A stretch of 64,000 nucleotides of DNA from Macrostomum lignano (Eukaryota), in the NCBI GenBank assembly GCA_002269645.1, contig NIVC01000797.1, forward strand, positions 62,001 through 126,000. The letters run 5' to 3'. The notes under the pieces are model-generated. The model was not told the DNA's origin and ran no database searches. It saw only the letters and a program-made list of their open reading frames with translations. A program made the translations under genes and the position numbers. Below, piece by piece: positions 5,601 through 47,914 of this stretch. The stretch's first letter is position 1. Each line of letters begins with the position of its first letter.

Positions 5601-8600
5601 ATCAGTGACCCACTAAATACACTACATGGATAAATCACTGACCCACTAAAGACACGACACGGATAAATCAGTGACCCACTAAAGACACCACACGGATAAA
5701 TCAGTGACCCACTAAAGACACCAGACGGATAAATCAGTGACCCACTAAATACACTACATGGATAGATCAGTGACCCACTAAAGACAGACACGGATAAATC
5801 AGTAACCCACTAAAGACACCACACGGATAAATCAGTGACCCACTAAAGACACGACACGGATAAATCAGTGACCCACTAAATACACTACATGGATAAATCA
5901 CTGACCCACTAAAGACACGACACGGATAAATCAGTGACCCACTAAATACACTACATGGATAAATCACTGACCCACTAAAGACACCACACGGATAAATCAG
6001 TGACCCACTAAAGACACCACACGGATAAATCAGTGACCCACTAAAGACACCAGACGGATAAATCAGTGACCCACTAAATACACTACATGGATAGATCAGT
6101 GACCCACTAAAGACAGACACGGATAAATCAGTAACCCACTAAAGACACCACACGGATAAATCAGTGACCCACTAAAGACACGACACGGATAAATTAGTGA
6201 CCCACTAAAGACACGACACGGATAAATCAGTGACCCACTAAATACACTACATGGATAAATCACTGACCCACTAAAGACACCACACGGATAAATCAGTGAC
6301 CCACTAAAGACACGACACGGATAAATCAGTGACTTACTAAAGACACCGCAGGGATAATCAGTGACCCACAGGGATGAATCCGTGACCCACAAAAAGACCC
6401 CAGAGATACATCAGTAACTCAGTGAAGAACTCAGAGGAAAAGTCACAAACAATACATGAAAAGAACATTACCTGAACAGCTTCTTGAGTTGGCGGCTTTA
6501 ACTCAGCATCGCTAGGCCGATAATCCATCAGCAGCATGACCTGTTGCCGGGTGAACTGACAATTCGGATTCATCTCGTCAACAATTCGATCAGCAACGCT
6601 CTGCTTGGATACTTGCCGATCGTAAATCTTTCTCTCCATAGTGTTGTCAGTGATTAGCCGGTAGATATAGCACGGCTTAACCTGGCCGTATCTATACACT
6701 CGGCAAACGGCCTGACAATCGTGACAAGGATTCCAAGAAGCGTCCATGACAACTACGCGATTAGCGCCAATCAGATTGATGCCCAAACAGCCGGCCCTGG
6801 TGCTGAGCAGGAAGAGTTTGGCTGAGCTGTCCGTTGAATTAAACGAATTTATCATCTTCTCGCGATCGCTGGCGACTGTAGAACCGTCCAACCGAAAATA
6901 GGACACACCTTTGCACCATTTGATACCATCCTGCGATTCTGGATCTACTGGCCAGGTGCGCAAGAACTGCTCCAATAAGTCTAGAGTGAACAGCGACTGA
7001 CTAAACACCAATAGTCTATCGTCGCGACTAACTGATTCGTTTAATATGCGCTGGAATGCGAGTATTTTAGCTCCATTCTCTAGCAAATTTGGCTTGTAAT
7101 TCTTCATGATTTCCTCAGCCCAATCTAGCGACAACACGGCATTGTCATTGTTAGTCAGACTGCCGACATTGTTAAACAAATCGCTATTGTCGCTTTTCTG
7201 CACTGTGCTACGACGGCCGCGACTTTTCTTGGCCGGCGCAGCCGCCGAAGTTGAAGAGGTTGAAGCGACGGACTCGGCTAGCGAGGCGCCGCTCTGAACA
7301 GGAGTCAAACCGGCGGAGTCCTTGGCGCTGCCGGTCCCATCGACATCGCAGGTGTAATCAATATCCAGATCGTCAGCAGCGGCAGCCAGATTCGATGCTT
7401 TCGCTTGCAACAAGTGATAGAGAATGTCCGGATGATTCCAGATTTTGCAACCGACAGCGAATGCTTTCAAAGGATTTGCGGCCGCCCAGCCTGACAGGCC
7501 ATCGGATTGCAGACTCTGCATGAACCTGGAGTACAGGGCCTCCTGAATCGGACTCATTCTCAACAGTAGGACAAATTCAGTCTTCGGCGGCAACGATTTC
7601 TGCAGCACCGAATGCGACCGACGTTGGACGAAACCGGACAAGAGTTCGTGCAAGACGTGCGCCCTGTAGCGCATGAGTTTCCGATCGGACAGAGTGGAAT
7701 CGACACACTGACCGTTGCTAATTGGCCGCTCGAACATATTTGAGAACTGCTGTTTGGTACCAAGAAAATTTGGCCTAACAAAATCTACCATGCACCAGTA
7801 CTCTAGCAGGTTGTTCTGCAGCGGATAGCCGGTCATTACCACGCGTCTTCGTGTTTTTAAATTTTTCAACGCTTTACTAATTCCGGCTGCCGAATTCTTA
7901 ATCCGATGACCCTCGTCGCAGATGACCACCTGGGGTCCCGGATCTACTAGGGCTGAGCGGACCTGCTCCCAAATGGTCAGGGCTTCGTCTTCTTTGTCCA
8001 CGTCAATCACAATGGGATCTGGTTCCGGTTTCGGCTGGGATTGGGATTGACTGCCGCTTTGAGTCTGCAGGCTGGCCGAGCTGCCGGATCTGCGACTCAA
8101 CGAGCGAGACGAGTTGCTGCCGCCGCCGCCGCCAGTCTTGTAGCGCTTCTGCAACAGCAGGCGGAACATCTCGTAGCCTAGCAACAGGACGCCGCCAGCC
8201 TCCTGCCATTGGCTGATTACTCTGTGCCTGCAATGTTGGGCAGTGAGTGATTTATTGAGACTTTCAAGTGGGAGATAAATGCACTGATTAAATTAGTTAT
8301 TAAGTGAGTGAATGATTGGGTAAATAATTAAGTAAATGAATGAGTGAACGATCTAGTAAATGAGTGAATTATTGAGTAAATGAGTGAATGATTGAGTAAA
8401 TGAGTGAATGATTGAGTGAATGGTCGAGTAAATGAGTGAATGATTGAGTAAATGAGTGAATTATTGAGTAAATGAGTGCATGATCGAGTAAATGAGTAAA
8501 TGATTGAGTAAATGAATGAGTGAGCGATCTAGTAAATGAGTGAATGATTGAGTGAATGAGTGAATGATTGAGTGAATGAGTGAATGAGTGAATGATTGAG

Positions 8601-11600
8601 TGAATGATTGAATGAATGAGTGAATGATTGAGTGAATGAGTGAATGATTGAGTGAATGAGTGAATGATTGAATGAGTGAATGATTGAGTGAATGAGTGAA
8701 TGATTGAGTGAATGATTGAGTGAATGAGTGAATGATTGAGTGAATGAGTGAATGAGTGAATGATTGAGTGAATGAGTGAATGATTGAGTGAATGAGTGAA
8801 TGAGTGAATGATTGAGTGAATGATTGAGTGAATGAGTGAATGATTGAGTGAATGAGTGAATGAGTGAATGATTGAGTGAATGATTGAATGAATGAGTGAA
8901 TGATTGAGTGAATGAGTGAATGATTGAGTGAATGAGTGAATGATTGAGTGAATGAGTGAATGATTGAGTGAATGAGTGAATGATTGAGTGAGTGAGTGAA
9001 TGATTGAGTGAATGGTTGAGTAAATGAGTGAATGATCGAGTAAATGAGTGAATTATTAAGTAAGTGAGTGAATGGTTGAGTAAATTATTGAATAGTCGAG
9101 TAAATTATTGAATGGTCGAGTAAATGAGTGAATTATTAAGTAAGTGAGTGAATGGTCGACTAAATGAGTGAATTAATGATCAAGTGAGTTAATGATTGAA
9201 TGCGTGAGTGAGTGAGCGAGCGACTTACCTGGCGGTCATAGTCTTGCAGGAGTCGCTAATAACGTGCAGTGCAAATTTGCGCTTATCAGCCTCATCCGGA
9301 CAGGCGGCCTCATCAACCGGCAGCCAGTGATTGAACTCCGCCACCCAATTCTGAATGGTGTTGATTGGCACAATGATAAGCACCGATTTCACGCCTACTC
9401 CGCTAAATAAAGCGTGGCAGAAGGCGCACACCTGAAATTATGCGAGAAATAAGATCTCTTCACGTTTTTTTTTAGAAAATTAAATTCAGAGAGAATTTTA
9501 ATAAAGTTAAACACAGGTTGTCAAAGCTGTAAATCTCTTTGTTCAATGGGCATGCCAGTTGTCTAATAGAGTCCGAACTCTAATCTAACAGGCTTAAAGA
9601 CCTTACCTAACAGTTATAGAGCCATTATCTAACAGGCAAAAAGACCTTATCTAACAGTTACGGAGCCATTATCTAACAGGCATAAATACCTTATCTAACA
9701 GTTAGAGAGCCCTTATCCAACAGGTGTAAAGGCCTTATCCAACAGTTACAGAGTCATTATCCAACAGTTACAGAGCATTTATGTAATAGGCATAAATACC
9801 TTATGTAACAGTTAGAGAGTCCTTATCCAAAAGTTACAGAGCCCTTATCTAAAAGTTACAGAGCCCTTACCAACAGTTACAGAGTCCCTATCCAACAGTT
9901 ACAGAGCCCTTATCTAAAAGTTACAGAGCCCTTACCAACAGTTACAGAGTCCCTTACCAACAGTTACAGAGTCCCTATCCAACAGTTACAGAGCCCTTAT
10001 CTAACAGGCATAAATACCTTATGTAACAGTTAGAGAGCCCTTATCCAATAGGTGTAAAGACCTTATCTAACAGTTACAGAGTCCTTATCCAAAAGTTACA
10101 AAGCCCTTATTTAAAAGTTAAAGAGCCCTTATCTAACAGTTAAAGAGCCCTTATCTAACAGGCATAAATACCTTATCTAACAGTTACAGAGTCCTTATCT
10201 AAAAGTTACAGAGACCTTACCAACAGTTACAGAGCCCTTATCTAACAGGCATAAATACCTTATCCAACAGTTACAGAGCCCTTATCTAACAGGTGCAAAG
10301 ACCTTATCTAAAAGTTACTGAGGCCTTATCTAACAGTTACAGAGCCTTTATCTAGCAGATGCAAAGCAAAGCCAAATATAAAAAGCAACAAAAGTGTCCA
10401 TCGCACACCAACCTGCAGAGTCTTGCCCAGTCCCATACTGTGCGCCAGTATACAACCAAATCCTGGCGTACTATTAAACAATTGCAAATTCTCCACAACA
10501 TTATCGTATAGGAAACGAACTCCGCCAATTTGATGCGGCCTAATAGCCTTGGCTATCCGGCTTGGCAAATAGATGTCGCTATCGTCCTGCGGATGACTGA
10601 CATTCACCAGTACGCGACCAGATACATCTGGCACATTGTGCTCATCTTTAGCATGCTTGCCGTCAACATCAACGCCATCGTCTTCGTCTTCTTTATCGGC
10701 GGCGGCGTCGGAGTCTTCATTGCCGGCATCCTCATTATCGTCGCTGTCAATCACGATAGTCTCCTGTTGCTGCTGCAGCGGCGAAGACACGCCTCGGCCA
10801 GTGAGCAGCTGATTTAAACTGCTGTACTGCGGCACCCGATTGAGCAGGTTGCGACCGACAGAGAAATTCGACGAAGAATAATAGCCAGAAGACGATGAGG
10901 GAGCGGATGGTATTAAGAATTTGGCTGACGCGGACGTTGGCGAAGATGTCTTGGATCGTTTCGCTGGAGGCGGTTCCACGATGCAACAGGCGTCATCGTC
11001 TTCTTCGTCATCACGATCCTCATCCTCATCATTCGTCTTATCGGCTTTCGAGCCTGTAGTAGAAGTTTCAGCGGCTGCTGCTGCTTTTGCTGCTAAGCGA
11101 TCTTCTTTAGTTTCAAGCAGAGTTTCTAAGGTGGACGCCTTGGCGGCTGCGGCGGAGGCGGAGGCCTGCTGCTGCTTCTCTTGGATTCGCTTTCTACGCT
11201 CCATCTCGGCTTTTTGAGCTTCGAGTGTCGCTTTGTCAACTTTTGTGTCGCGTATTCGACGAATATTGCGACGCTCGAATAGAGTCTTGGATTGCTTGGT
11301 GGGACTGTCTTCGGATGTCGGGGCAGCCGCCGCCGAAGATGCCGGGGTCTGCTGGCGCTGGCGTCTGCGATGGCGGGTGGGTGACAGGTGCGGCATGGAG
11401 CTTGCTGGGGATCTGGGAGAGGTAAAGAGTCATGGGGATCTGGGAGAGGTGAAGAGTCATGGGGATCTGGGAGAGGTGAAGAGTCATGGGGATCTGGGAG
11501 TGTAGCGCCATGGGGATCTGGGAGAGGTGAAGAGTCATGGGGATCTGGGAGAGGTGAAGAGTCATGGGGATCTGGGAGAGGTGAAGAGTCATGGGAATCT

Positions 11601-13162
11601 GGGTGTGTAGCGCCATGGGATCTGGGAGAGGTGGAGTCATGGGGATCTGGGAGAGGTGAAGAGTCATGGGGATCTGGGAAGAGTCATGGGGATCTGGGAG
11701 ACGTGAGAAATGTGAGATGTGAGCATGTGAGAAATCGACTATTTTGTGCAACCAGCATTTTGTATTTCATCACTTACTTTGCCTCTTTTGCTGCAGCTTT
11801 GATCAATTCGTTCTGATCCACACCTGGCGGCAGCAGATCCTCGGCCGATTTACCTGCATTGTCATCCTCATCACAGTCTTCTTCTGTAGAATCTTCGTCG
11901 TCGTCGTCGTCGTTGAAATCTTCGTCGAATTCTGCAGTTCCATGTTCAGCCGGACTGTCTTCGACTCCGGCTTCAGAGAAGAAGAAATCGGTGGGGTCGC
12001 ACTCGTCCGATACGAGGCAGTCCAGGCCCATGATTTCCGCCACGGCCGCTTCGGCAGCTGCTTCCACAGCGTCACCGTTTGCGGCGGACTGCGCTTGATC
12101 TAATTGATAAAGAAAGATAATAGTAGCAACAGCATGGGGATGGGAGAGTGGAGACGGCGCAGCAACTGAGGATCTGTGAGGCTGGCCCAGCAACTGACAC
12201 TCTGGGAGGCTGGCCCAGCAACTGAGGATCTGGGAGGCTGGTCCAGCAACTGAGGATTCAGGAAGCTGGCCCAGCAACTGAGGATCTGGGAGGCTGGCAC
12301 AGCAACTGAGGATCTGGGAGGCTGGCCCAGCAACTGACACTCTGGGAGGCTGGCCTAGCAACTGACACTCTGGGAGGCTAGCCCAGTAACTAAGGATCTG
12401 GGAGGCTGGGCCAGCAACTGAGGATTTAGGAGGCTGGCCCAGCAATTGACACTCTAGGAGAGGCTAGCACAGCAACTGACACTCTGGGAGGCTGGCCCAG
12501 CATCTGACACTCTGGGAGGCTGGCCCAGCAACTGAGGATCTGGGAGGCTGGCCCTGCAACTGGGGATCTGGGAGGCTGGCCCTGCAACTGGGGATCTGGG
12601 AGGCTGGCCCAGCAACTGACACTCTGGGAGGCTGGCCCAGCAACTGACACTCTGGGAGGCTGGCCCAGCAACTGACACTCTGGGAGGCTGGTCCAGCAAC
12701 TGACACTCTGGGAGGCTGGCCCTGCAACTGACACTCTGGGAGGCTGGCCCAGCAACTGACACTCTGGGAGGCTGGCCCAGCAACTGCGGATCTTGAAGCG
12801 TCTGAGGATCTGGAGCAAATAAAGTTAAAGACCCAAATTTCATAGTCTAAACCAAGTGCACGTTCGCAGGGGCATTGCAAAAAAGTTTTATATTGCTTAC
12901 TAATTGCAGCAGAGTTTTGAACGCTTGAAAGCGCATCATTTTCTTCTAAAACCGACATCGGTTTAGCAGTGTCACGCACTGAAGCAGACTCTCCACTACC
13001 GTTGATGCCAACTGTAGTCAAGTCCTGCTTCTGCTGAAGATCTTGCTTCATCAGCAATTTCTGTTGTTGTTCCTCCTCTTCTTGCTGTTGCCCATTAAAT
13101 GATTCAAGAGAATTATTGAAGCCGAATACCTGGGAATCGCGGTGCACAATAGCTTTGCTCAT
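407..13162 (-). CDS. RAD54L2: Helicase ARIP4 / RAD54-like 2 (SNF2-family ATPase), 7 coding exons, ~1986 aa
   Basis: Exons (minus strand): 13162-12901, 12099-11778, 11412-10413, 9431-9229, 8227-6472, 3892-2369, 1300-407. All introns are GT-AG with matching phases (1,2,0,2,0,0); total 5961 nt = 1987 codons; in-frame TAA upstream of ATG 13162. Motifs: GFGCILAHSMGLGKTLQ (Walker A), ICDEGHRIKN (Walker B), TGYPLQNNLLEYWCMVDFVRPNFLG, RLDGST, FLLSTRAGCLGINLIGANRVVVMDASWNPCHDCQAVCRVYRYGQ, and the ARIP4-type post-helicase FTHESLLLDRQEAKLTRAEKR. The exon 6 acceptor could alternatively be at 3946 (same phase). Confidence 0.93.
1630..2195. repeat. AT-rich degenerate (CCTAA/CCTTAA/TCTAA)n array in RAD54L2 intron 6
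   Basis: Repeated aacctaaacctaaccttaaactaaatct; telomere-like but not canonical TTAGGG. Confidence 0.9.
2548..2765 (-). repeat. Coding CAG/CAA repeat giving a ~70-residue polyglutamine tract in RAD54L2 exon 6
   Basis: Plus strand (ctg/ttg)n; translated QQQQQPQQQQQQKQQQLQQQ... in the ORF at 2231-4015. Confidence 0.9.
3960..6370. repeat. 33-bp minisatellite (cagtgacccactaaagacacgacacggataaat), ~70 units, RAD54L2 intron 5
   Basis: 11-aa periodic ORFs (CRVFSGSLIYP); 32-bp variant units; 329-bp higher-order period at the right end. Confidence 0.97.
8300..9220. repeat. (GAGTGAAT / GAGTGAATGATT)n array in RAD54L2 intron 4
   Basis: Direct reading of mixed 8- and 12-bp units. Confidence 0.95.
9583..10345. 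repeat. Degenerate ~22-bp minisatellite (atctaacagttacagagccctt) in RAD54L2 intron 3
   Basis: Direct reading. Confidence 0.92.
11407..11700. repeat. 27-bp minisatellite (sense: atccccatgactcttcacctctcccag) in RAD54L2 intron 2, overlapping the 3' splice site
   Basis: 9-aa periodic ORF SQIPMTLHL; the last unit's CAG (11415-11413) is the phase-compatible acceptor for exon 3. Confidence 0.92.
12165..12812 (-). repeat. 28-bp minisatellite (atcctcagttgctgggccagcctcccag), array 1, RAD54L2 intron 1
   Basis: 28-aa (3-unit) periodic ORFs SSVAGPASQILSCWASLPDPQLLGQPPR; same family as 33940 and 37855. Confidence 0.95.
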
Positions 13163-17748: not shown

Positions 17749-18184
17749 CAAGGACTACCTAATTAGAGACTACTATTAGGCCTACAACTAGATCAGTGTT
17801 GTTACTAAAGAAAAAAAATATTTTTTAAAAACTTTAAATTTTAACAAGAAGTAAAACAAATTTATCCAAACAATCTAAGGTATAAAATGTCTTTTTTATT
17901 AGGTTTAGTTAGTATCACTTAAAATTATTGTGCCTCATATTCTTTTACCTTTCCAGTGCAATTAAACGTTGTAAAACTTTAGGTTTTTGACATTTCGGGT
18001 TTATGATATTTTGGTAACCGATCAAAAGGGCGACAGTCAAAGGGAACCCGTCAGTATATTTATTGGAATTTCGAGTTCAGAATTAGACTTGTATTTGTTA
18101 ATGTACATGTACATGTATGAGTGGCGGTCAGGCCGGTGCACGACTGAGAGCGGGGCCCGCCTGTACACCCAGGCCCCCTGCAGC

Positions 18185-18337
18185 TGTTGGGGAGTTTTCC
18201 ACAGCCAGCCAGTTTAATCTGACTCAAACCCTCCTTCTCGTTAAGTATAAATAACTAAGGTTAACAATAAATATACACAAGGTCTCTTTGCTCGCTTGCT
18301 ACACTACATGTAGCTGCCACTCGCAAGCCGCTATACA
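18185..18337 (+). repeat. Putative 5' LTR of the Gypsy element
   Basis: TG...CA-bounded 153-bp segment with tataaa and aataaa, followed by a degenerate PBS-like ttgatgagccc and then gag. No matching 3' LTR in the window. Confidence 0.5.
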
Positions 18338-21300
18338 TTGATGAGCCCTATACGCAGCCATTTCGTGCCAAGGCCCCACAAACCGACTCTGCTGTGTCCC
18401 AGCTGAAACTGCCCACGTTTTGGGCGGTCCAGCCTCGAGCATGGTTCACCCAGGCCGAAGATCAGTTCACCCTGAGAGACAGCACTCAGGACGAAACAAA
18501 GGTACGCCCATCCAGTCGCAGCTCTTGACCAGCAGACAGCAGAGCGTCTGCTCGATGTGCTCGAGGCTCCTCCGGAGGCGAACAAGGTACTAAGCTAAAG
18601 GAGCGCCGCAACAGCACTTTCGATTCAACTCCTCAGCAGCGATCCAGCCGCCTGCTCAGCATGTCCGGCCTATGCGACCGGCGGCCTTCCGAGCTGATGG
18701 ACGAGATGCTCGCCCTGCTCGAGAACGACCGCCCCTGCCTGCTGTTCGAGGAGCTGTTCCGCCAGGCGCCAGCAGCTGCCACCGGAGGTACGCATGGCCA
18801 TGACAACCGGCAGTTTTGCGGACCCCCGGGGCAGCAGCGCAGCAGGCGGACAAGATCTGGGCCAGCCAGCCGAAGCTGTTCGCGGCCTCCGTCCAGCAGC
18901 CGGCGGCAGACCCAGCCCAGCAAGCCCAGCCGGCGGTCTCTGCGGCCAGCAAGGGCGCCAGACAGAGACGGCTCCAGCAACACCGCCCGGACGGCAGCCT
19001 CACCTCGACCTCGGCATCCGGCGCTGCTCCTGGCCGTTCATTCTGGCCGAGGTCTCCGCCCGCTGATCGGCGACGACTTTCTTACGGCACCAAGGCCTGC
19101 TGGTGGACCTGTCGCACCAGCGCCTCCTGGACGCCCGCTCGCTCGCCAGCGTGCACCTGCTTGACGGCGCGGGGCCCAGACTGCAGCTCGCCGCAGCCGC
19201 CGCTGCGGACCCGTACAGCCAGCTGCTGGCCGAGTTCCCCGCCCTCACCGAGCCGTTCCAGCGGGCTCATCCAGCCCACGACAACATGGGGTGAAGCATC
19301 ACATCCCGACGCAGGGCCCGCCGGTCCACGCCCGCCCTAGCTCGCCGCCTGCCGCTGCAGCTGGCGGTGGCCAAGGAGGAGTGCCGGCTCCTGGAGCAGC
19401 TCGGCATCGAGCGCCGGTCCAACAGCCCTTGGTCCTCGCCGTTGCACATGGTTGCATCCGGCGGCTGGCGGCCCTGCGGCGATTACAGGCGGCTCATCGA
19501 CGCCACGGTGCCCGACCGCTACTCGCGGTGCCGCACATCCAGGACTTCTCAGCGCGCCTGGCCGGCTGCTTGGTCTTCTCCAAGATCGATTTCGTGCGTG
19601 GCTACCACCAGGTGCCTGTGGCCGTAGTTGACGTGCCCAAGACCGCTGTCACCACCTCGTTCGGCCTCCTCGAGGTCCTGCGAATGCCGTTCGGCCTCAA
19701 AAACGTCAACCAGGCCTTCCAGACTTCGTTTTCGCCTACATCAACGACTTCTTGGTCGCTAGCCGCAGCCCGCAGCAGCACATAGTGCACCTGCGGACGC
19801 TGTTCCAGCGCCTGGCCGAGAACGACCTTATCGTCAACCCGGCCAAGTGCGAGTTCGGCCGCAGCGAGATCGACTTCCTCGGCCACCGGATCAGCGCCCA
19901 GGGGGCCGTGCCGCTGCCAGCCAAAGTCGACGCCATCGCTATGTTCGCACCGCCAGCCACCGTCAAGAGCCGCCGGCATGGTGAATTTTTAGCACCGCTT
20001 CGTGCCGCGCGCAGCCCAGCTGCTGCGCCCCATCCATGCGGCCATGGCCGGCAAAGAGAAGTTCATCCGGTGGACGCCCAAGCTTACCGCCGCTTTCGAC
20101 GGAGCGAAGCGAGTGCTGGCCTCTGCCGCCATGCTGGCGCACCCGTGGCCATACGACGCCTCCGATACCGCAGTCGGCGCGGCGCTCAAGCAGCGGGTTG
20201 GTAGCCTTGTTCGCCCTGTACCTGGCGGTCTGGCACTTTCACTATTTTCTCGAGGGCCGCGCGTTTACCGCTTTCACGGACCACAAGCCGCAGGTCGCCG
20301 CCATGTCCAAGACATCTGACCCGTGGTCCGCCAGACAGCAGCGCCACCTGGCCTACGTGTCCGAGTTCACCACGGACATCCAGCACGTGGCGGGCAAGGA
20401 TAACTCGGTCGCAGACGCGCTGTCCCGCTGCACGGTCTCTTCGGTGCAGCCCCGGCTGCTCCCCGGCGTGGATTTCGCGGCAATGGCGCAGGCGCAGGCC
20501 AGTCAGGCCGACGCCAGCCTCCAACTTGAGCCGCTGCAGCTCAGCCCCGGTGTCGACCTGCGTTGCGACATCTCCACGGGCCGGCCGCGCCCGTTGGTGC
20601 CGCCGAATTTCCGACGCTCCGTTTTTGACGCTTCCACGGTCTCGCCCACCCGTCCGTCCGCAGCACGAGGCGCCTCGTGGCCGCCAAGTTCGTGTGGGCC
20701 GGCATGAGCAAGGACGTCAGCCGTTGAGCTCGGTCCAGTGTCGCCTCCGCTGGCCAAGGTGCAGCGGCACGTCGCCGCCCCGGTTGGCAACATCCGCGTT
20801 CCGGACTGGCCGCACCGACCTGGTGGGGCCGCTGCCGCCTTCGCAAGGCTTCACACACCTGCTGACCATCGTGGACCGTTTCACCCGGTGGCCGGAGGCG
20901 AATTCGATGACCGACACCTCCGCGGCCGCGTGCGCCTCCGCCTTCATCGCCGATTGGATCGCCAGGTTTGGCGTGCCGAGCGGAATCACATCGCCGGATC
21001 GAGCCGGATCGCGGCTCGCAGTTCACGTCGCAGCTGTGGTCCAACGTCTCACGACTCCTCGGAATGCAGCTCCACCGGACAACGGCTTTCCATCCGCAGG
21101 CGAACAGGCTGATCGAACGATTCCACCGGCAGCTGAAGGCCTCCCTCATGGCGCGACTGGCCGCACCAGCCTGGGTCAGCGAGCTGCCCTGGGTGCTGCT
21201 CGGCATCCGGACGGCCCCCCGAGGAGAACCTGCTGGCATCGTCGGCCGAGCTGGTCTACGGTGCGCCCCTCTGCGTGCCCGGCGAGTGCCTGCACCCAGC

Positions 21301-21625
21301 CCGCCGGCCGTCGACCACGACCAGTTCCTCGCCCGGCTCCGCGGTGCCGTCCAGGCATTCCGGCCGACGCCGACGTCCCGTCACAGCAGCCGCCCCACCG
21401 CCTGGCCCGCCGCCCTCGACGCCTGCCAGTTCATCTTCATCCGGCGCGATGGCCACCGCCCCCCGCTGCAGCGACCTTACGACGGCCCGTTCAAGGTCCT
21501 CGAGCGGGACACCAAAGCTTTAATTCCTGCTGGATTTGGGCACTCGCCGCGACTGGGTGTCAGTGGAGAGGCTGAAGCCAGCCGTCATCGACGCGAACGA
21601 CCCTGTACCGACGCTGGCTCTGCGA
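18185..21625 (+). mobile_element. Decayed Ty3/Gypsy LTR retrotransposon (gag-RT-RNaseH-integrase, many frameshifts)
   Basis: Gag LKLPTFWAVQPRAWFTQAE and [57 protein letters not shown] (mutated YxDD), KCEFGRSEIDFLGH. RNaseH DASDTAVGA, FTDHKP. Integrase DLVGPLPPSQGFTHLLTIVDRFTRWPEA, DRGSQFTS, HPQANRLIERFHR. Order RT-RH-INT indicates Gypsy. Confidence 0.95.
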
Positions 21626-21735
21626 CCGAGAGTATTGGGAACATATAGTGTATTTTTGTGTATTGATTATTATTTAATCACTAGTTGTAATAAATTTAGG
21701 TATGTATATTTACAATTGATTATTACTTTTTTTAC

Positions 21736-21835
21736 CGTATGATTCCAAGAATTCGTTTGGTATTTAAACCGCGGGTAGAATTCAATTTTGTACTTCTTTT
21801 TTCCCGTCGTTTCGCGCCGCCTCCTGATTGGTCCA
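21736..21835 (-). promoter_or_regulatory. Candidate promoter and 5' non-coding exon of RAD54L2
   Basis: E2F-consensus TTTCGCGC (21810-21817), CCAAT on the minus strand (21827-21831) and a minus-strand donor G|GTAAA at 21735. Would pair with the acceptor at 13241 upstream of ATG 13162. Inference only. Confidence 0.25.
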
Positions 21836-22560
21836 AGTCGTATTTCTATTAGTCAGTCATAATATTTATTCCTTTAGTTCAACCAATTTAGATATATAGA
21901 ATATCAAAGTATCAAATCGTTAAATAAAAATAAATATACTCGTAAATAATTGGCCGTCTGAACGTGAACTAATAAACCGCTACACCAAAGCTTTTTGCAT
22001 ATATGGTAGACTTGTGCAGTGTATGGTTTTGTAGGTAGACAAAGATAAATTTTTCACGAGTGGCGAAGCCACGAGAGTGACTGAAATTAATCATTGACAA
22101 AACCATATATCCACAAGCACATTGTCTCATGAATGTATTTTTAGTGGCTTTGAATAAAATGGTTTTGAAACGTTGAATATGAGCGTACAGTATACTACAC
22201 ATGTATGTATTTTTTCAAAGACCTATAATTTCACATCATACATATACTTCTCAGCTAGCTAACTACCCAAAATATTTTAATTTCATGGTTGCTCTGCAGA
22301 CCCCTTTTGGCCATAGACAATGAAAATAAAAGTGTTCAACAGCTTGATTCTCACACCCTAGGGGTTAAACTGCTTGCTCCTTGGGCTCAATTTGGTTTGG
22401 AAAGTGCATGCAAATGCAATATTTGCTACAATTTATTGATCTATCGTCTTTTTCTACAAAAGAATCCGTGGAAAATATGTTATACTCGTAGTTTCACTGG
22501 TCTGGAATTGACACTTCGATAACAATTTCTTCACAGATTATTATTTTGCAAATTCGGAAA

Positions 22561-24803
22561 ATGAAAACAGCGTGTCTCCATCAGGTGCTGCTGCTCCTAC
22601 CGCTCGTGGAGTTAATTCTGCTGACGATTGTTGGTGAGCAGGCAAATTCGATCAGTGCAGGTCCCTACTGCTTCTGAAAGCAGAGTTAACACACAAATAT
22701 ACGTACAGGGCACATGCACTATTTAGTCTGCAGATAGGGTGATTTTCAGAACTATTAGAGTACTATAGTCACGATATATACTACGAGAGCAGCTATACCA
22801 GTCACAAATGTACAAATCATAAGCTGACTAACCTACCCTAATACTTAAAAGTTAATGTACATTACTTTCATTACCGCCGTTAAAGCTTCTAACCATGGGT
22901 ACTAATTTACTTTTAACATAATCGTTTAAAACATTCGAAACATAAGAGACATGCGAAAAATGATCAAGCAGTGTACTTACATATGTAACGCACCTCCTAT
23001 AAATAATAATTAAACATTGTATTTATACAGCCGCTGAAGGTACCACTGAAGCCACCATCTGGAACTAGATGAATTACCTGTGTCATCTTATGCATGAAAG
23101 TTTAGCAGTAGACAACTGGCAATTCGAAAATGCTCTCAGTCGCGCTTTCGCGTCAGATCGGTCACATCCGGTTTTAAAAACATTGCTTTAGGTAAACCCT
23201 CACTGTACTATATTATAATAGGTCTGTATCGGCCCTAGCTACTTATGAATACGAGAAATCTCAAATGGGATACCGCATACCAGTGACAATTGACTGTCAG
23301 TGACAATTGACTGTCAGTAACAATTGACTGTCAGTGACATTTGACTGTCAGTGACATTTGACTGTCAGTGACAATTGACTGTCAGTGACAATTGACTGTC
23401 AGTGACAATTGATTGTCAGTGACAATTGACTGTCAGTGACAATTGACTGTCAGTGACAATTGACTGTCAGTGACATTTGACTGTCAGTGACAATTAACTG
23501 TCAGTGACAATTGACTGTCAGTGGCATTTGACTGTCAGTGACAATTGACTGTCAGTAACATTTGACTGTCAGTAACATTTGACTGTCAGTGACATTTGAC
23601 TGTCAGTAACATTTGACTGTCAGTGACATTTGACTGTCAGTGACATTTGACTGTCAGTGACATTTGACTTCCAGTGAAATTTGACTGCCAGCAATGTGAC
23701 TCCTATGAATGGCGCAGCTGCTTCCTTATTTTGGCGCTGAAGCACTTCGTCAGGGTATGGGGGGTCGAACCTCGCAAGAAATTTCTAGATCATCCACGCC
23801 TTCAGGGCGTCAAATCTTACCTGCGACACAAGAAAGTGCATGGTGTACTATTTAAAATCCCGCTCGTGGGCACTGATAAGCGCCAAACTCTCTACGTAAG
23901 CTGTGGCGCCAGTTACGGTGTTATAAGCTCGCCTGCAGCGCTAAAATCTCAATGAAGTGATAAAATGATCCCTGATGAAGGAAAGCAGTTGAACCCTTCC
24001 CAAGAGAAAGCTAAATCCGCGTCCCTGCATGTGACCCCTGGCTGACGTGAACCCTCCCGCAGACAAAAGTACATGCACAAGCACATGCCACTTTTATAGT
24101 CTATAGTTGACGCTACAATTGCGACATTAAAAGTTGAGATAGTGAAATTTTTCAGAAAGAGATGAAATTCACAGAGAAAGTTACAGGAGGGCTGTGTGGG
24201 CACCCTGTCGCAAAGGACTTGGGGGTTGCCACACACAGCCTCAATTACCTCAGCTAATGCTGGCACTCATTTTACAGCTGCATGGGTGAACTGAAGCAAT
24301 GCAGAGTTAAGTGTCTTGCTCAGGGACACAAATTGTTCCGAGTGGGTCGAGAATCGAACCCCCGACCTTTCAGCCGTGATTCGGACGCTCTAACCTCAAG
24401 ACTACGACCACCGGATTGATGATCAACATGTAGCTGCTACTACAATAGTAGCATAGTTTGCGTGTTTTGGCATAAAAATTCAGAAAATTTCTCCCTATGT
24501 GCGTAAGAAAGGCGAGAGAGATGATCGACTGAACTGTACTTAACCACGCATTTGTGTGCCGTTTCGTACTTTCTAGCTGAAGGCCACCCGCTGATTGACC
24601 TCCGCAAAGTGTCATGCAAGCCGTATGAGCAAATCTACTGCGCAAACGGCGGCAGCTGCACCGTGACGGTGATCTGGTCGCTGCTGTTCAGCCGAATCGT
24701 AAAGCGAATCGACCGGCCGACCTGCGAGTGTCCGATTGGCTACAGCGGCTACAACTGCGACATCCCAGAGCTGCCGCCTTACCTACTCTCGTACTTGCAT
24801 TAG
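22561..24803 (+). CDS. Small secreted single-EGF-like-domain protein, 2 exons, 99 aa
   Basis: Exon 22561-22633 (MKTACLHQVLLLLPLVELILLTIV, donor G|GTGAG, phase 1) plus exon 24577-24803 (acceptor tttctag|, phase 1) gives ...AEGHPLIDLRKVSCKPYEQIYCANGGSCTVTVIWSLLFSRIVKRIDRPTCECPIGYSGYNCDIPELPPYLLSYLH*. Hydrophobic signal peptide; C-x7-C-x5-C-x21-CxC-x8-C; AATAAA at 24898-24903. Confidence 0.8.
23281..23685. repeat. 17-bp minisatellite (cagtgacaattgactgt) in the EGF-like gene intron
   Basis: About 23 units, direct reading. Confidence 0.95.
24180..24412 (-). mobile_element. tRNA-derived SINE fragment
   Basis: Minus strand: A-box-like tagtcttgagg, B-box GGTTCGATTC (24360-24351), then gtgtccctgagcaagacacttaac...cagctgtaaaatgagt, a CORE-like central domain typical of SINE2 families. 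The 3' boundary is uncertain. Confidence 0.6.
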
Positions 24804-25823
24804 ACAGAGTTGCAATGTGGAATTAAATCGATTATTAGTGATATACATAAAGTAGGCGACTATGTACGCGTTTCAAAGTTGGCCTTTCTTTTTGAGAAAT
24901 AAAAAACTGTTTCAAGTTCTGCTTTTACGATTTGTCAATATTGCTGTCGTTTGCTGTTGAAGTCGCTGATTCTTTTACGGTGGAGCGATACGTGATGCCA
25001 TTTTTTTCTCGAGCTGCGGATGCTGCGAGAATTTCTCTCCTTCTCAAACCGGCCCCCTAATTTATACTTATGCAGCAACATTGAAAAGTCGCCACTCTTT
25101 GCGCCAGTGAGCAATTTCTCTTGGACTATTCTGAAATAAAAGATGCGAGAAAACTGATCGGGGCAGCTTTAACAGTAGAACTACCAAGAGGGGAGGGGGA
25201 ATCCCGGGGGGAAATGTTTTCTGCTGCGCCGTATTGAGCAACGCAGGCACACGAAATTCAAGAATATGCGCTAAATTTTTGTTGCGCACCTTCTCAAACA
25301 AGAATCAAGTCGCCAGCCCTCCGGACCGTCGAGATATTCGACGATTCTGCCAGAAGGTCGCATTTTTCCCATAAGCGCTAGTGTATTCAGTACACCCCTG
25401 TGCGCCAATCAGCACTGCGCCTCAGCGCAGCCTTGCCAAGCCTCTAAATTTCATCAGCACGTCGATCACATGTGTCATCAGCTGTGACTTCGTTCGTCAC
25501 TAGCCTTCACCCAAGCGGAGCTTGTGGACCTTCAACAGGTGGCACCAGGTGACTATGGACAGCCTGATGCGAATTTCTCTAGTTTCGCCGATCAAGCCTC
25601 GACAGTGGGCAAGCCTTACTGCTGGACATCCTCAGCTAGTCTTTCAAGCATTCCGTCATCACCCCGACGCCGTCGGCTCCTTCAACAGGAGGCACCAGGT
25701 GACTTATGAAGATCCTGTTGCAACTATGTCAGATTTTTCTTATCAAGCTTCAATAATGGGCAAACTTTAACTCCTGGTCATTCTCAGCTAGACTCTCAAA
25801 CAGCCTATCAACACCCGACGTAA

Positions 25824-33200: not shown

Positions 33201-36200
33201 TAGGATGTCAGTAGGTTCTAATTTGGATGTCAGTGGATTCTAATTAGGATGTCAGTAGGTTCTAATTAGGATGTTGGTAGGTTCTAATTAGGATGTCAGT
33301 AGACTCTAATTAGGATGTCAGTAGATTCTAATTAGGATGTCAGTAGGTTCTAATTAGGATGTCAGTATGTTCTAATTAGGATGTCAGTAGGTTCTAATTA
33401 GGATGTCAGTATGTTCTAATTAGGATGTCAGTAGGTTCTAATTAGGATGTCAGTAAATTCTACGAAATTGTTTTCGGATTTATAGTTTAGTGTCAGTAGG
33501 CCAACTGATTTGACTGTCAGTAATCTCCTGCCAAGCAACTAAGCCCGACCGTATTTAACCTATCGAACCCCAGGGCCCTGCCAGTCCGACCAGTTCACCA
33601 ACGTGTTCGCAACCGAGAATGAATTGCGCGCTCACAAAATTAGCCATCACAGCGGCGTTATGGACAAGGCTCTGCTCAGAGAGACTAGACGGCTTGATGT
33701 CGATATCAGGTGAGAGGCTGGACCAGTTGAGTCCTCTTAAATCAGTGGTCGGAAAACTCCGGCTAAACGCCTCTAACCGACCCTCGGGTCCCTTGAAACT
33801 TTAAAATAGCCATCCGGCCCTCTCGTCTCCACTCCCCACTCTGAATCACAGTCATACGCTAGGTTCCTCATCTAGCCTTTGAAGTAAAAAATGTTTGCCG
33901 ATCCCCCTCTCTTACTTAGACCTAGATCCTCAGCTGCTGGGCCAGCCTCCCAGATCCTCAGCTGCTGGGCCAGCCTCCCAGATCCTCAGCTGCTGGGCCA
34001 GCCTCCCAGATCCTCAGCTGCTGGGCCAGCCTCCCAGATCCTCAGTTGCTGGGCCAGCCTCCCAAATCCTCAGTTGCTGGGCCACCAGCCTCCCAGATCC
34101 TCAGTTGCTGGGCCAGCCTCCCAGATCCTCAGTTGCTTGGCCAGCCTCCCAGAGTGTCAGTTGCTTGGCCAGCCTCCCAGATCCTCAGTTGCTAAGCCAG
34201 CCTCCCAGATCCTCAGTTGCTGGACCAGCCTCCCAGATCCTCAGTTGTTGGGCCAGCCTTTCAGATCCCCATTTGCTGGGCCAGCCTCCCAGATCCTCAG
34301 TTGCTGGGCCAGCCTCCCAGATCCTCAGTTGGCACCTCCCGCACCCGCAGGTATCAGCGTCGTGGAGCCTCCGGCGTCAACAGCGGGCCCAGCGGCTCTA
34401 GAGGCGGCGGCGGAGGCAGCGGCAGTGGTGTCGGCCCTCCCGCCACCTCGCACATGCCGACAGCCCGCGAAGCGCTTGACCAACTGGTGTCCCTTGCCCC
34501 GGGTGTTCGCGAATTCGCTGCCAACGCTCTCGCCCAGTCGGCGGCCGCCCAGCGCGAGCTCGACGCGAACGGCTACGCTGAGAATCCCGAAGAGTTTCCC
34601 ACCCTTACCGGAGAAACTCAAACTAAATTTGTTGGCCGACAAGCGGCTAAAGCTACTGAGGAAGATTTCCCCAGCTTACCGTCGGCTTCTTCAACTGCCC
34701 CGGCTGCGACGGAAGCGAGCAGCCAACAGCAGCAGCAGCAGCAGGTTCCGCCCCCACCGGTGTACAGCGGCCCAAGGCGAATGCCAGCCGCGATTCCATT
34801 CACCAGCCTGGTGTCCGGCAATAATGCCCCACCATCCTCTGCCGCTAATCTAGAGGAGGAATATCCCACGCTAGGTCGGCCGGTAGGCTCTGCTAGCGCC
34901 GCCTCTAACTCAATCTGGGGCCCGCCATCGGCTACTAGCAGTAGTAGCGCTAGCAAACCAAATATCAGTAGTAATGCCAATAAAAAGGTTAAGAAGCCGC
35001 CGCCGTCAACTAGCAGCGCTAATGACTTCCCGTCGCTGCCGCAACCGTCTGGTCCGCCGCCGCAGCCGTCGGCCGTTGCTAAGCCGACGCCTAAGCCGCG
35101 GACGAGGCCCCCTACAGCGCCGCCCCAGCCGCAAAAGCCGACAGCGGCTCCCGAGGCTTCCAAGCAGCAACAGCAGCCACCGCCGCCGCCCCCAGATCCT
35201 GTCGAGTATCGACCAGCCCCGAATCTTCGCTATCAGCAACTTGGCAGCGGCGGCGGCGGAGCTGCGTCGGTGGCGCTCCAACCAGACGAGCCGACAGTCT
35301 ACCGGCCAATGAATTCCATTGCCTGCGTATCGTTCGACTCGCTGCATCAGCAGCAGCCAGCGCAGCAGAAAAAGCAAGAGAAGTTCTCTTTAGTTGAAGA
35401 TTTTCCTGGACTGCCGGCTCCGGCCTCTTCCGCTCCGATTGCTGCTAGGAACAATAACACTACTAAGAGTAGCAACAGCGCAAAGAATCGTTTTGCCGCT
35501 TTAAACGATTCGTCCCCTATTGATTTAGTGGGCGATGGCGATGACTGGTCGGAATGGCCGGCAGCTGTCAGTCAGCAAAAGCAACAACAACAGCAACAGC
35601 AGAAATCTCTAAATTTCAAGCAGAAGTCTACCGCGGGGGCTGTCTTCTCCGGGCAGATGGACGATTTCCCGACTCTTGGAGGTCCGTCCTCTTCTTCAGG
35701 TGCTTCAGCTGCTCCCGTGTGGCGCAAAGATGGCCGCTCGCAGCCCAAGCAGCAGCAGGAAAAATATTTGGCTCCTTCCACGCCTCTCGGATTAAGTGCC
35801 TCAGCGCAGTCTGTAGCCGGCGGGAAAAAGCAGAAAAAGAAACAACAGAAACAGCAACAGGAAAAGAAACAATTAGAGTTGCAGTCGGATTCTACTGCAA
35901 GCCAGCAGCAGCAGAAGCAACAACCGCCGCCGCCTAGAAATGCCTCTTGGTGCGATCTGCTTGTGCGCGAGCAGTACACCTACTCGCCACCGGAAGGGCT
36001 CCTTCAGAGACAGGGTCAACTATTGGAACGCTTGCAAGCCTGTCTGGCTGACCAAGAAAAGTTTACTGGCTTTGCTAAAGCTTCATCAGAGTACTTGCAA
36101 GGCCAATTAGAGCCTGAGCAGTTTCTCAGCAAAGCCGTCAATCTGCTTGGCGGGAAACAGTGGCGACTGATAGCTGCGGATTTGATCAGCACCCTGCCTA

Positions 36201-36337
36201 GCATTAGCAGGCAGAGAGACTTGCGCAAACGGTTGCCGGATGAATTGCGCTCGGCGTTGGCTGTGTGCGACACCTGCGCCCAGACTCTGCTGCCCGAAGA
36301 TCTTGACGGGCATCGGTGCATGCAGATTGAAGAGTAG
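30294..36337 (+). CDS. ZNF598: E3 ubiquitin ligase ZNF598 (Hel2 family), 5 exons, 935 aa
   Basis: Exons 30294-30458, 31529-31765, 32645-32927, 33574-33709, 34351-36337; GT-AG with phases 0,0,1,2; 2808 nt. N-terminal RING CLVC..CNHTVCAKC..CPIC. C2H2 fingers CSDC..HVNNDH, HGHPKCQIC..HLRRQHFMCHIC, HFIASHYVC, GPCQSDQFTNVFATENELRAHKISHH. Low-complexity middle with FPxL motifs; C-terminal helical domain plus CDTC..H finger. Exon 3 is absent from the ORF track. Confidence 0.9.
30519..31497 (-). mobile_element. Internally deleted Tc1/mariner element in ZNF598 intron 1
   Basis: TA TSD (30517-30518, 31498-31499); ~200-bp TIRs starting CGAGGGGTGTCCAAAAAGTAGTGAT. The interior 31065-30717 encodes a frameshifted transposase HTH region (MDVHSVV..GHSASEIHAKL..VYRWMEQFSKGRTDLADQHRTGRP..DEDSRMTIREIADRLDKPKSTIHR); no DDD/E domain. 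Confidence 0.9.
31835..32595. repeat. ~31-bp minisatellite (tagaaatcgccctcacagtcctatctctctc) in ZNF598 intron 2
   Basis: Direct reading; alternating variant units. Confidence 0.93.
32985..33465. repeat. 22-bp minisatellite (ttctaattaggatgtcagtagg) in ZNF598 intron 3
   Basis: Direct reading. Confidence 0.95.
33940..34330 (+). repeat. 28-bp minisatellite, array 2, ZNF598 intron 4
   Basis: Same unit as 12165-12812; ends 20 nt upstream of the exon 5 acceptor (34350). Confidence 0.95.
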
Positions 36338-37210: not shown

Positions 37211-37854
37211 AACTCATAGACAGCCAGGCAAGCAGACACTGTCATGCCCCTATGAGTATGATGGAGTAATGATTTAATAACACGGTGCATACCTGCAGCT
37301 AAACCCTCATTGCTAAGAAAGTTGAAAAAACACCAGTTATCGCGTTTTTTTAATATTGAAATATTTTCTGTTTTGCTTCTGCATTATATGTACTCTACTA
37401 CTTTAAAACTGACTTCGGTTGAGACCTTCTGACCTACAATCAGAGGTTTTAGTAACTTGTAAGCTTTAAAGTAATAAATTTCTTAAAAGCCTTAATTGTT
37501 TTGTTGTAATCCACTATTTGAAAAACTGCCATATTTTGTTTTAATAATATAGTTCTCTGTGAACAAAAAGATGATAAAATTTCAACTAAACTAATTAGAG
37601 GTTTTCAGAAAGTTTTCGTTCTATGTCATATGAAAACTTTGAGTAAACTATGACATTGATAAGCAACTTTGGTTCATGAATATTAATATGCAACCATGAA
37701 TTTTTGGGGGTCGATTATTGCACATTTATTTCCAAATGTACTTTTGTTGTCAAAGATTCCATTCTAATTTTATCTTGCGATTCATGTCGAGATATTTTTG
37801 GTGCGAACTTCATTACGAACTATATCACTTAGTTTACATTGATAACACATAAGA

Positions 37855-38180
37855 GCCTCCCAGAGTGTCAGTTGCTGGGCCAGCCTCCCAGAGTGTCAGT
37901 TGCTGGGCCAGCTTCCCAGATCCCCAGTTGCAGGGCCAGCCTCCCAGATCCCCAGTTGCTGGGCCAGCCTCCCAGAGTGTCAGTTGCTGGGCCAGCCTTC
38001 CAAAGTGTCAGTTGCAGGGCCAGCCTCCCAGATCCCCAGTTGCTGGGCCAGCCTCCCAGAGTGTCAGTTGCTGGGCCAGCCTCCCAAAGTGTCAGTTGCA
38101 GGGCCAGCCTCCCAGATCCTCAGTTGCTGGGCCAGCCTCCAGATCCTCAGTTGCTGGGCTAGCCTCCCAGATTCCCAGTT
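37855..38180 (+). repeat. 28-bp minisatellite, array 3
   Basis: Same family, with agagtgtcag and agatccccag variants as in array 1. Confidence 0.93.
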
Positions 38181-39164
38181 GCTTCATGATGTTCAAGTTC
38201 ATCAAGTTCATCAAGTTCATCATGTTCTTTCTTTAGTGCTTTTTGCACTAAAACTAAAACCTTGCACTACGAATCTTTAGAAGATTCGTAATTGACTTCG
38301 ATTAGTAATTGTCAAATTCAGCAGCATTCGGTTGTGTTTTGCTTTTGCCTATTCACCTGTACTGCTCTGTCGGCTACTAATTACTACCTTGACTAATTAT
38401 CAACCACTAATGAGCGATAAAGCGTGAAACGTTAATAAATAGATTGGCATATTTTAGCCGGCTTTAATTTATGCTGGGTTTTAAAACATTAAAGATAAAG
38501 AAAGGCACAAAAACGGTTTTATTTATAAATTGATATAGTTTTCGTGTTTTATTACTAACAGTAGCTGCAGGTTGTAAAATAATTAATGCTACATAGGCAG
38601 AATGTATGCAGCTTATTTCATAGTCTTTGACCTGCCTTCTAAACACTGGACCATTCTATTCTATTCCTATCCCTCCCTCGTTTCTTTCTCAACAACTACG
38701 CTTCTCTAAACCTGCTGAGTAGTTAGATTCGTGTGCAGTTGTTAAGTAAACTCCCTATTTGACGCGCACTGCTCTACTCGCCTCCTACCTCTTCTCTTCT
38801 CTGTCGATCCAAGATTGCTCATTTTTTATTTCTTACCAGCACAGCCTGCATTAGCCTTGCCTCTAGGTAGAGGTAATTAAGAGAGAGAGAGGGGGCCACA
38901 GCCACCTCAACCTCCCCCTGACAACAGCCTAGTGACAGCTTTTCGAATATCGCTCAGTGTATTATTGTGTGTACTCAAGATTTTCTAAACTAGCCTATAT
39001 AGACAAAGTGGCAAGGTGCGATCTTAACTATAAAATCTAAATTTTTAAAACACTAAAATTTAAACCTGTTTTTTAAATCATAATTAAATCGACACTCGAG
39101 GACATCCGTACAGCGTTGGCTTGAGAATAATCGTAGTTTTAGTGTTGTTTCAAAATATAGATAA

Positions 39165-47340: not shown

Positions 47341-47914
47341 TGTGGGTCTGATTTCTTAGTGTCTTGTCTTAGTGACTGTCCGTGTCTCTGTGTTAGTGTT
47401 TGTCTTTTATCTCCCAGTGTACATCTCATGGAGCCGAAAGCTCAGACGAGTCAGCTTTCAAGTTCCCCCACGGAGAGTCAACAGAGGCCGGCCGGCCTTG
47501 TCCGATCCATCATTCAACTTCCGACCAGGCCCTCAAGCACGGCGATCTCTCTTTCTTCGCCTCGCATTCATTTCCTCGAATGCGCGACCGAATCCGTCTG
47601 TTTGTTCCCCTCCCGCCATGATTGCCTGGCCTCAATATTTGCTCTGCCCCATGTCCTCCATCAGAGAGCACTTCAGCGGGACATGTCCTTCGGTTTGCAG
47701 CCCTGTCAAGCAGAGAAGGAAGAGAGAGAGAAAAGCAGACAGAGTCGGGGTGAAAAATTTACTTTCTGCTTAAAACAAGCCCCGATCAGCATCAAACTCG
47801 AAATTCTAGCAATCGCAAATCTGCACACTTTTCCAACCTGTGAGTGCTCCCCAATAGACGGGTGAAACTAATTAATTGGTACACGGCTTACTACTAACTC
47901 TGCCTTCACTTCTC

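Follow-up and report, generated by a model that had tools for sequence, protein, structure and literature searches.

The epidermal growth factor (EGF)-type ligands Spitz, Keren, and Gurken of Drosophila and human EGF and TGF-alpha carry a six-cysteine module with a C-x-C element followed by an eight-residue spacing, an aromatic residue before Cys2, a G-[YF]-x-G motif before Cys6, and a hydrophobic residue five positions past Cys6. They also have 10 to 13 residues between Cys3 and Cys4 (the C3-C4 loop) and an invariant Arg before Cys6, and they are shed from anchored precursors. We analyzed a 64,000-nucleotide stretch of Macrostomum lignano contig NIVC01000797.1 (hereafter, the window) and a two-exon gene within it whose 99-amino acid product (the window protein) shares the first set of features with these ligands but differs from them in the second. 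Judged from its sequence, the window protein is probably a diffusible EGF-type ligand or a ligand-like protein, a lineage-specific variant of the known forms.

Three other systems come close. LIN-3, the Caenorhabditis elegans ligand of LET-23 (PDB entries 9YOS, 9YOT, and 9YOV), resembles the window protein in that it has one EGF module whose C3-C4 loop is over-long, and the loop starts with an alternating pattern in both (HVEVIF in LIN-3 and TVTVIW in the window protein). LIN-3 differs in its 17-residue loop, the Arg kept before Cys6 (GTRC), the C-x3-C spacing of its first loop, and a transmembrane precursor of several hundred residues. The anchorless EGF proteins of flatworms, including Smed-egf-6 as well as Smed-egf-7, consist, like the window protein, of a signal peptide and one EGF module without a transmembrane segment, and Smed-egf-7 has a YCAN-x2-C motif in common with it; however, their C3-C4 loops have 10 residues, an Arg precedes Cys6, and they carry long N-terminal pro-regions. 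RNA interference (RNAi) of Smed-egf-6 resembles that of egfr-5, which supports the view that such proteins can be real ligands (PMC4914847). EGF-1 of Lineus ruber, a 98-amino acid putative ligand, closely matches the window protein in size and layout (signal peptide, short linker, EGF module, short tail, no anchor), but its loop has 12 residues, GYRC is kept, and it comes from another phylum; orthology could not be shown. Small secreted anchorless EGF ligand candidates of flatworms and nemerteans are already known, and what is distinctive here is the 21-residue hairpin and the lack of the Arg corresponding to Arg41 of EGF, both common to two paralogues.

Coordinates of the gene are collected in Table 1. 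Translation starts with the ATG at 22561, and the 24 complete codons of exon 1, which is closed by one further base, encode MKTACLHQVLLLLPLVELILLTIV, composed of the n-region MKTACLHQ and the hydrophobic core VLLLLPLVELILLTIV (a 15-residue hydropathy peak of 2.8 over residues 10 to 24). The splice donor is G/GTGAGC at 22633/22634, and the acceptor TTTCTAG ends at 24576. After the Ala codon, exon 2 encodes EGHPLIDLRKVSCKPYEQIYCANGGSCTVTVIWSLLFSRIVKRIDRPTCECPIGYSGYNCDIPELPPYLLSYLH followed by TAG at 24801–24803, giving the product MKTACLHQVLLLLPLVELILLTIV-A-EGHPL...SYLH. The signal peptide is most likely cleaved after Ala25 as the −1 residue (between IVA and EG), i.e., at the exon junction. The cysteines are spaced C-x7-C-x5-C-x21-C-x-C-x8-C with IGYSGYNC around Cys6, and the score of the Pfam EGF model PF00008 is 22.3 bits, only just above the cut-off of 21.5. 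The only long hydrophobic stretch is formed by the N-terminal 24 residues; the hydrophobic part of the loop is short (a 15-residue Kyte-Doolittle maximum of 1.74) and flanked by disulfide-bonded cysteines. The protein has no membrane anchor: the stop codon is located 14 residues past Cys6 in the EGF exon, and the three frames 3′ of it, in AT-rich sequence, encode no membrane-spanning segment. A previous reading of this locus, made from the sequence alone (the sequence-only reading), had described a 99-residue product with a signal peptide, a single six-cysteine module, and no anchor, and translation, hydropathy, and Pfam agree with it. Its GYNC, TVTVIWSLLF, and KR are all present in the translation, and the 1.9-kb intron that it placed in the gene comes to 1,943 nt, with canonical splice sites and an intact frame.

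The exact product is UniProt entry A0A1I8I0R8, an “EGF-like domain-containing protein” of Macrostomum lignano. A duplicate protein in GenBank, PAA87597.1 (BOX15_Mlig017956g1, contig NIVC01000225.1), is 97% identical and has the same two-exon, 99-amino acid model. Contrary to the expectation that it would easily be missed by annotation, the gene was thus already in public annotation, where the model of the duplicate derives from RNA sequencing (RNA-seq). Because an identical and a 97%-identical protein of the same length are on record, the cysteine module is, on the sequence evidence, not a chance pattern. The window and NIVC01000225.1 are collinear over more than 13 kb at 93 to 98% identity, which fits the known redundancy of the DV1 assembly, 180 Mb of which belong to duplicated blocks with an identity of 95% or more (PMC5730564). 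Exon structure is the same at the duplicate locus, and the copies are 96 to 98% identical throughout. Six coding bases differ, producing L15F, I31V, and I65N plus two synonymous changes; divergence is 2.0% in the coding sequence versus 3.9% in the intron, where the alignment has 96.1% identity and 354 gap columns. The BOX15 gene set was derived wholly from genome-guided RNA-seq assemblies (StringTie/TACO) with experimentally supported transcript ends (PMC5730564), so the two-exon model rests, at least for the duplicate, on transcript data. The model of the duplicate copy indicates that the gene is transcribed. The window gene is a real two-exon M. lignano gene, publicly annotated and uncharacterized: we found no paper naming Mlig017956 and none with functional work on Macrostomum EGF receptor (EGFR) ligands.

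To find relatives, we scanned 1.84 billion representative proteins with HMMER without a profile. Only two proteins related over the full module were returned, P0004 (E = 1.6e-6) and P0013 (E = 8.4e-4). P0004 is a 1,902-amino acid merged model found in UniParc/MetaClust only, with CSLTGDQYYCANDGTCLVTVSWLTREQRVEQRLDQPHCRCRPGFRGINC and a 21-residue C3-C4 loop in its C-terminal part; its similarity and the neighboring UniParc identifiers point to M. lignano as its origin. P0013 is BOX15_Mlig028837g1/g2 (hereafter, Mlig028837), a 192-amino acid protein assigned to M. lignano by its sources. Its signal peptide is followed by an EGF module, whose C3-C4 loop has 24 residues, and then, unlike in the window protein, by a clear transmembrane segment and a cytoplasmic tail. 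The three proteins have a CAN-x-G-x-C-[TL]-V-x-V core in common and are 36 to 37% identical over the mature region. In the window protein, P0004, and Mlig028837, the residue before Cys6 is Asn, Asn, and Lys, and the C3-C4 loop has 21, 21, and 24 residues, respectively. By these alignments, the long loop is shown to be a family trait; the family is a small M. lignano group of proteins with one EGF module each, and one member is a conventional tethered precursor. The PF00008 scores of the two paralogues, 16.8 and 19.9 bits, are below threshold, which probably explains their “hypothetical protein” labels. Word-indexed homologue searches, run with the protein, with the family alignment, and with the tail of P0004, yielded the duplicate alone or no match. 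The search for paralogues and orthologues proposed by the sequence-only reading was productive in the first respect, with two long-loop relatives from the HMMER scan, and not in the second, with none outside M. lignano.

The family also bears on whether the 99-amino acid model could be an annotation fragment of a larger gene, encoding either a multi-EGF protein or a ligand with a downstream transmembrane exon. Two models from an older assembly, P0004 and P0015 (2,763 amino acids), do embed related modules in very large proteins. Both are merged chimeras, however, in which low-complexity read-through translation is fused to unrelated acyltransferase-like or kinase sequence, whereas the RNA-seq–based annotation gives 99 amino acids for the duplicate. 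The gene contains only one module, unlike the tandem arrays of matrix or Notch-type proteins, and tblastn found neither a second copy nor any other EGF-like segment in the window. Mlig028837 resembles the window gene in its order of a signal-peptide exon and an EGF exon, the latter encoding the EGF module, the transmembrane segment, and the tail together. Since the transmembrane segment of the anchored paralogue is encoded in its EGF exon, the window gene lacks an anchor because its own EGF exon stops early and not through an overlooked exon. A fragment origin is scarcely credible in view of these observations: the frame ends in the EGF exon, the large models are merged, and neither the extra transmembrane exons nor the multi-EGF parent considered by the sequence-only reading found support. 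The introns of the two genes differ: that of Mlig028837 is in phase 0 and lies six residues ahead of Cys1, and that of the window gene is in phase 1 and lies thirteen residues ahead of it.

Two alternative gene structures were considered and rejected. A downstream transmembrane exon or read-through finds no hydrophobic frame past the stop, which is followed by AATAAA at 24898, and the anchored paralogue offers no such exon as a precedent. As for a mini-intron hidden in the loop, the only GT..AG candidate (GTGACG...TTCAG) has 29 nt, a length not divisible by three; its removal would destroy Cys4 to Cys6, and the paralogues have long in-frame loops of different sequence.

For comparison with the module, we used a panel of 25 EGF-type ligands, accepted or putative, that are listed in the Barberan et al. 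2016 supplement (PMC4914847). The C3-C4 spacing in this panel is 9 to 17 residues, LIN-3 having the longest, and the 21 to 24 residues of the M. lignano trio lie outside it. The loop is thus exceptionally long, as the sequence-only reading had it, but against a range broader than the 10 to 13 residues that it gave for EGFR ligands. Seven of the nine conserved ligand positions are kept in the window protein: Tyr45, Ala47, Asn48, Gly50, Tyr80, Gly82, and Leu90 match aromatic 13, non-polar 15, polar 16, Gly18, Tyr37, Gly39, and Leu47, respectively, and aromatic 22 and Arg41 are lost. Leu47 is an established conserved position of EGFR ligands. Positions 13, 15, 16, 18, 22, 37, and 39 are listed as conserved in the human ligands (PMC3554757). 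When sequences of solved structures were searched, the closest match was the LIN-3 EGF domain in its LET-23 complexes (E = 0.022 in a search of PDB size), followed by EGF (E = 0.038), TGF-alpha chimeras, Notch EGF11-13 (E = 0.07), Spitz, and neuregulin. Barberan et al. counted as putative EGF ligands small secretory-pathway proteins with exactly one EGF module (PMC4914847); the window protein, with its signal-peptide-like N terminus and single module, falls into this class. The membrane-anchored precursor form typical of EGF-type ligands is absent, but anchorless candidates have been described in flatworms and nemerteans, so the anchor is not universal (PMC4914847).

These comparisons lead us to favor, tentatively and at somewhat less than an even chance, a reading of the window protein as a diffusible EGF-type ligand of at least one M. 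lignano EGFR, bound in the manner of EGF and LIN-3. The signal peptide (residues 1 to 25) would send a 74-residue peptide into the secretory pathway, where it would fold as a single EGF module with three disulfides. Because the stop codon follows so soon after Cys6 in the same exon, the peptide would be released without shedding from the membrane. The hairpin formed by the loop would then bind against receptor domain I, and Tyr before Cys2 and Leu five residues past Cys6 would bind against domain III.

Several observations weigh against this reading. An Arg precedes Cys6 in 24 of the 25 panel ligands, whereas the window protein has Asn84 at this position, which corresponds to Arg41 of EGF and confirms the missing Arg remarked on by the sequence-only reading; when Arg41 of human EGF is replaced, binding falls to less than 1% (PMC3554757). 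Position 22, too, lacks its aromatic residue (Val54). Similarity to proven ligands is weak, with EGF modules from many unrelated proteins close behind in score. Neither the HMMER scan nor the word-indexed searches turned up an orthologue outside M. lignano. The two genomic copies are too similar to show purifying selection, with three non-synonymous versus two synonymous codon changes. The confidence of the structural model described below is moderate (mean predicted local distance difference test score, pLDDT, of 68; predicted template modeling score, pTM, of 0.44). Last, Foldseek against the PDB gave only non-significant generic EGF matches (best E = 0.8), from a library that closes in April 2026 and is therefore likely to lack the LIN-3 complexes, whose paper dates from July 2026.

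Several of these points could be read as signs of a secreted EGF-fold protein unrelated to EGFR, such as a component of glands, matrix, adhesive, or seminal fluid or a ligand of another receptor, whose likeness to EGFR ligands is that of a generic fold. We consider this somewhat unlikely, but it stays alive because Arg41 is missing, in three of the three family members, and the loop reaches far beyond the range of the panel. The statistically insecure similarity to true ligands, the roughly equal match of EGF modules from Notch and coagulation factors in both sequence and fold, and the restriction to M. lignano, typical of fast-evolving secretory products, are in line with it as well. The architecture argues the other way: a signal peptide with one EGF module, together with a sister gene of classical transmembrane layout, is the signature of EGF ligands (PMC4914847). 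The equivalents of Tyr13, Gly18, Tyr37, Gly39, and Leu47 are retained. In addition, eight EGFR paralogues are reported for M. lignano, whereas the survey of Barberan et al. 2016 yielded no more than one ligand of EGF type and one of neuregulin (NRG) type. We did not locate the EGF-type one in the machine-read supplement, an illegible page of which may have contained it.

The same substitution before Cys6 is the main argument for an antagonist or non-activating ligand, in which the hairpin would occupy domain I while domain III would not be engaged for want of Arg41. Arg41 is replaced by Asn, and human EGF depends on this Arg to bind with high affinity (PMC3554757). The sequence-only reading suggested antagonism from the long loop, but LIN-3, which has 17 loop residues and is the best match among solved structures, binds LET-23 domains I and III bivalently and activates it (PMC13416820). 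A long C3-C4 loop alone is thus compatible with activation and does not imply antagonism. The substitution, moreover, is common to the tethered paralogue (Lys) and P0004 (Asn), so it looks family-wide and possibly matched to the receptors rather than disabling in a single member, and the equivalents of Leu47 and Tyr13, which are also domain III contacts, are retained. The only well-known natural antagonist of this sort in the EGFR pathway is, to our knowledge, Drosophila Argos, which sequesters the ligand and has another architecture. Antagonism is therefore improbable in our estimate.

A family-wide loss could also mean that the three proteins are Macrostomum-specific true EGFR ligands with a rebuilt binding mode. 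EGF Arg41 pairs with an Asp of receptor domain III. In the M. lignano proteins, this salt bridge would have been given up and the hairpin would supply new contacts, having co-evolved with the eight independently expanded EGFRs, and the window gene would encode the freely diffusible member of the trio. We regard this version as rather doubtful. When the equivalent of Asp355 was sought, domain III of M. lignano EGFR-7 and EGFR-8 (from the Barberan supplement) gave no alignment to any solved EGFR.

The structure of the loop was modeled with AlphaFold2 from the four-sequence family alignment, without LIN-3. In mature numbering, the model has an N-terminal strand at residues 5 to 12, a long hairpin with strands at 26 to 36 and 39 to 44 and a turn at Phe37-Ser38, and a short C-terminal hairpin of the EGF fold; pLDDT in the hairpin block is 69 to 75. 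The loop is accordingly predicted, with moderate confidence, to be a rigid, extended amphipathic β-hairpin rather than a floppy segment, and alternating Val, Val, Trp, and Leu would form its hydrophobic face.

The position of the Lys-Arg (KR) pair in the model bears on the two-chain hormone put forward by the sequence-only reading, i.e., a proprotein cut at KR by a prohormone convertase into a disulfide-linked two-chain peptide. In the context R-I-V-K-R followed by I, an Arg lies upstream of the dibasic pair, the 97%-identical duplicate retains KR (SRNVKRID), and basic residues occur near the site in all three paralogues. The pair itself is not conserved, however: P0004 has QR at this site and Mlig028837 has KR with a Pro after it, and a Pro directly after the cleavage point disfavors convertases. 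Alignment with MAFFT brings out R-x-D, rather than a dibasic pair, as the recurring pattern of the family and LIN-3, although the placement of gaps in the shorter LIN-3 loop is arbitrary. In the model, KR corresponds to mature residues 42 and 43, within the second strand of the hairpin and not in an exposed turn, and we know of no EGF-family ligand that is processed within the C3-C4 loop. Because the dibasic pair is not conserved and lies in a predicted strand, cleavage finds no support in these comparisons and the model, and we consider a two-chain product very improbable.

M. lignano is a model of regeneration and stem cell biology in which transgenesis and RNAi are available, and EGFR signaling in planarians controls differentiation and regeneration. 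If the family includes real ligands, its members are candidate signals for the eight M. lignano EGFRs and would provide a natural test of how much change the EGF binding surface can tolerate, here a doubled C3-C4 hairpin and the absence of Arg41, while receptor activation is retained. If they are not ligands, the window protein would be another secreted EGF-fold protein specific to its lineage, and its general interest would be limited.

Table 1. Features of the EGF-type gene (coordinates in the window).
Feature	Coordinates	Strand	Content or basis
Exon 1, coding part	22561..22633	+	Residues 1–24 and base 1 of codon 25; signal peptide
Intron, phase 1, GT..AG, 1,943 nt	22634..24576	+	Sequence and comparison with duplicate locus
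Exon 2, coding part	24577..24803	+	Last two bases of codon 25 (Ala), 74-residue mature peptide, stop
EGF module, Cys38 to Cys85	24615..24758	+	Pfam PF00008 (residues 38–82) and cysteine spacing
21-residue C3-C4 loop (“B-loop”), TVTVIWSLLFSRIVKRIDRPT	24660..24722	+	Spacing; KR codons at 24702–24707
AATAAA, likely polyadenylation signal, 95 nt past stop	24898..24903	+	Motif scan only

Upstream of the gene, the acceptor-like sequence TTTCTTCACAG at 22526–22536, 25 nt before the ATG, may mark a site of trans-splicing, which affects 38.8% of M. lignano genes (PMC5730564). The intron contains a tandem array of a 17–base pair (bp) unit (CAGTGACAATTGACTGT) at 23281–23691, with 24 copies and 94% matches, across which the alignment to the duplicate locus breaks up, and other repeat debris. 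Rfam returned nothing at its gathering threshold; its sub-threshold microRNA and small nucleolar RNA matches in the intron all lie within or overlap the 17-bp array and were rejected as repeat artefacts. On the minus strand at 24270–24461, a stretch resembles the T-arm half of a tRNA (GGTTCGATTCTCGACCC) and is possibly a remnant of a short interspersed element; neither ARAGORN nor Rfam called a tRNA there. About 88 bp beside it (24374–24461) are absent from the duplicate locus.

The window as a whole is very rich in tandem repeats, with 45 Tandem Repeats Finder (TRF) rows scoring at least 200 (e.g., 3957–6369, 45010–47341, and 60931–63631). Several long open reading frames (ORFs; 39219–40463 and 45.4–47.4 kb) and Pfam matches to “antifreeze beta roll” and “PT repeat” coincide with such arrays. 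A 28-bp satellite (GGCCCAGCAACTGACACTCTGGGAGGCT) occurs in both orientations at 12156–12786, 33924–34331, and 37854–38183 and also at the start of the duplicate-locus sequence. Two plus-strand ORFs are located at 34217–36337 and 52057–54876; one has a ZNF598-type PAH domain (E = 4e-11), and the second, with 939 amino acids and an ATG start, has no Pfam match. Two minus-strand ORFs at 6358–8184 and 10326–11396 are probably exons of an SNF2-family helicase (SNF2-related, E = 7e-34; Helicase_C, E = 1.5e-16) and may equal the 1,966-amino acid minus-strand gene that runs off the start of the duplicate-locus sequence. The region at 18000–22000, upstream of the EGF-type gene, has a GC content of 61 to 62% versus ~40% around it and is present at the duplicate locus, too. 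The block, with an ORF at 20526–21575, has a weak match to rve (retroviral-type integrase core; E = 5e-4) and is probably a retrotransposon remnant.

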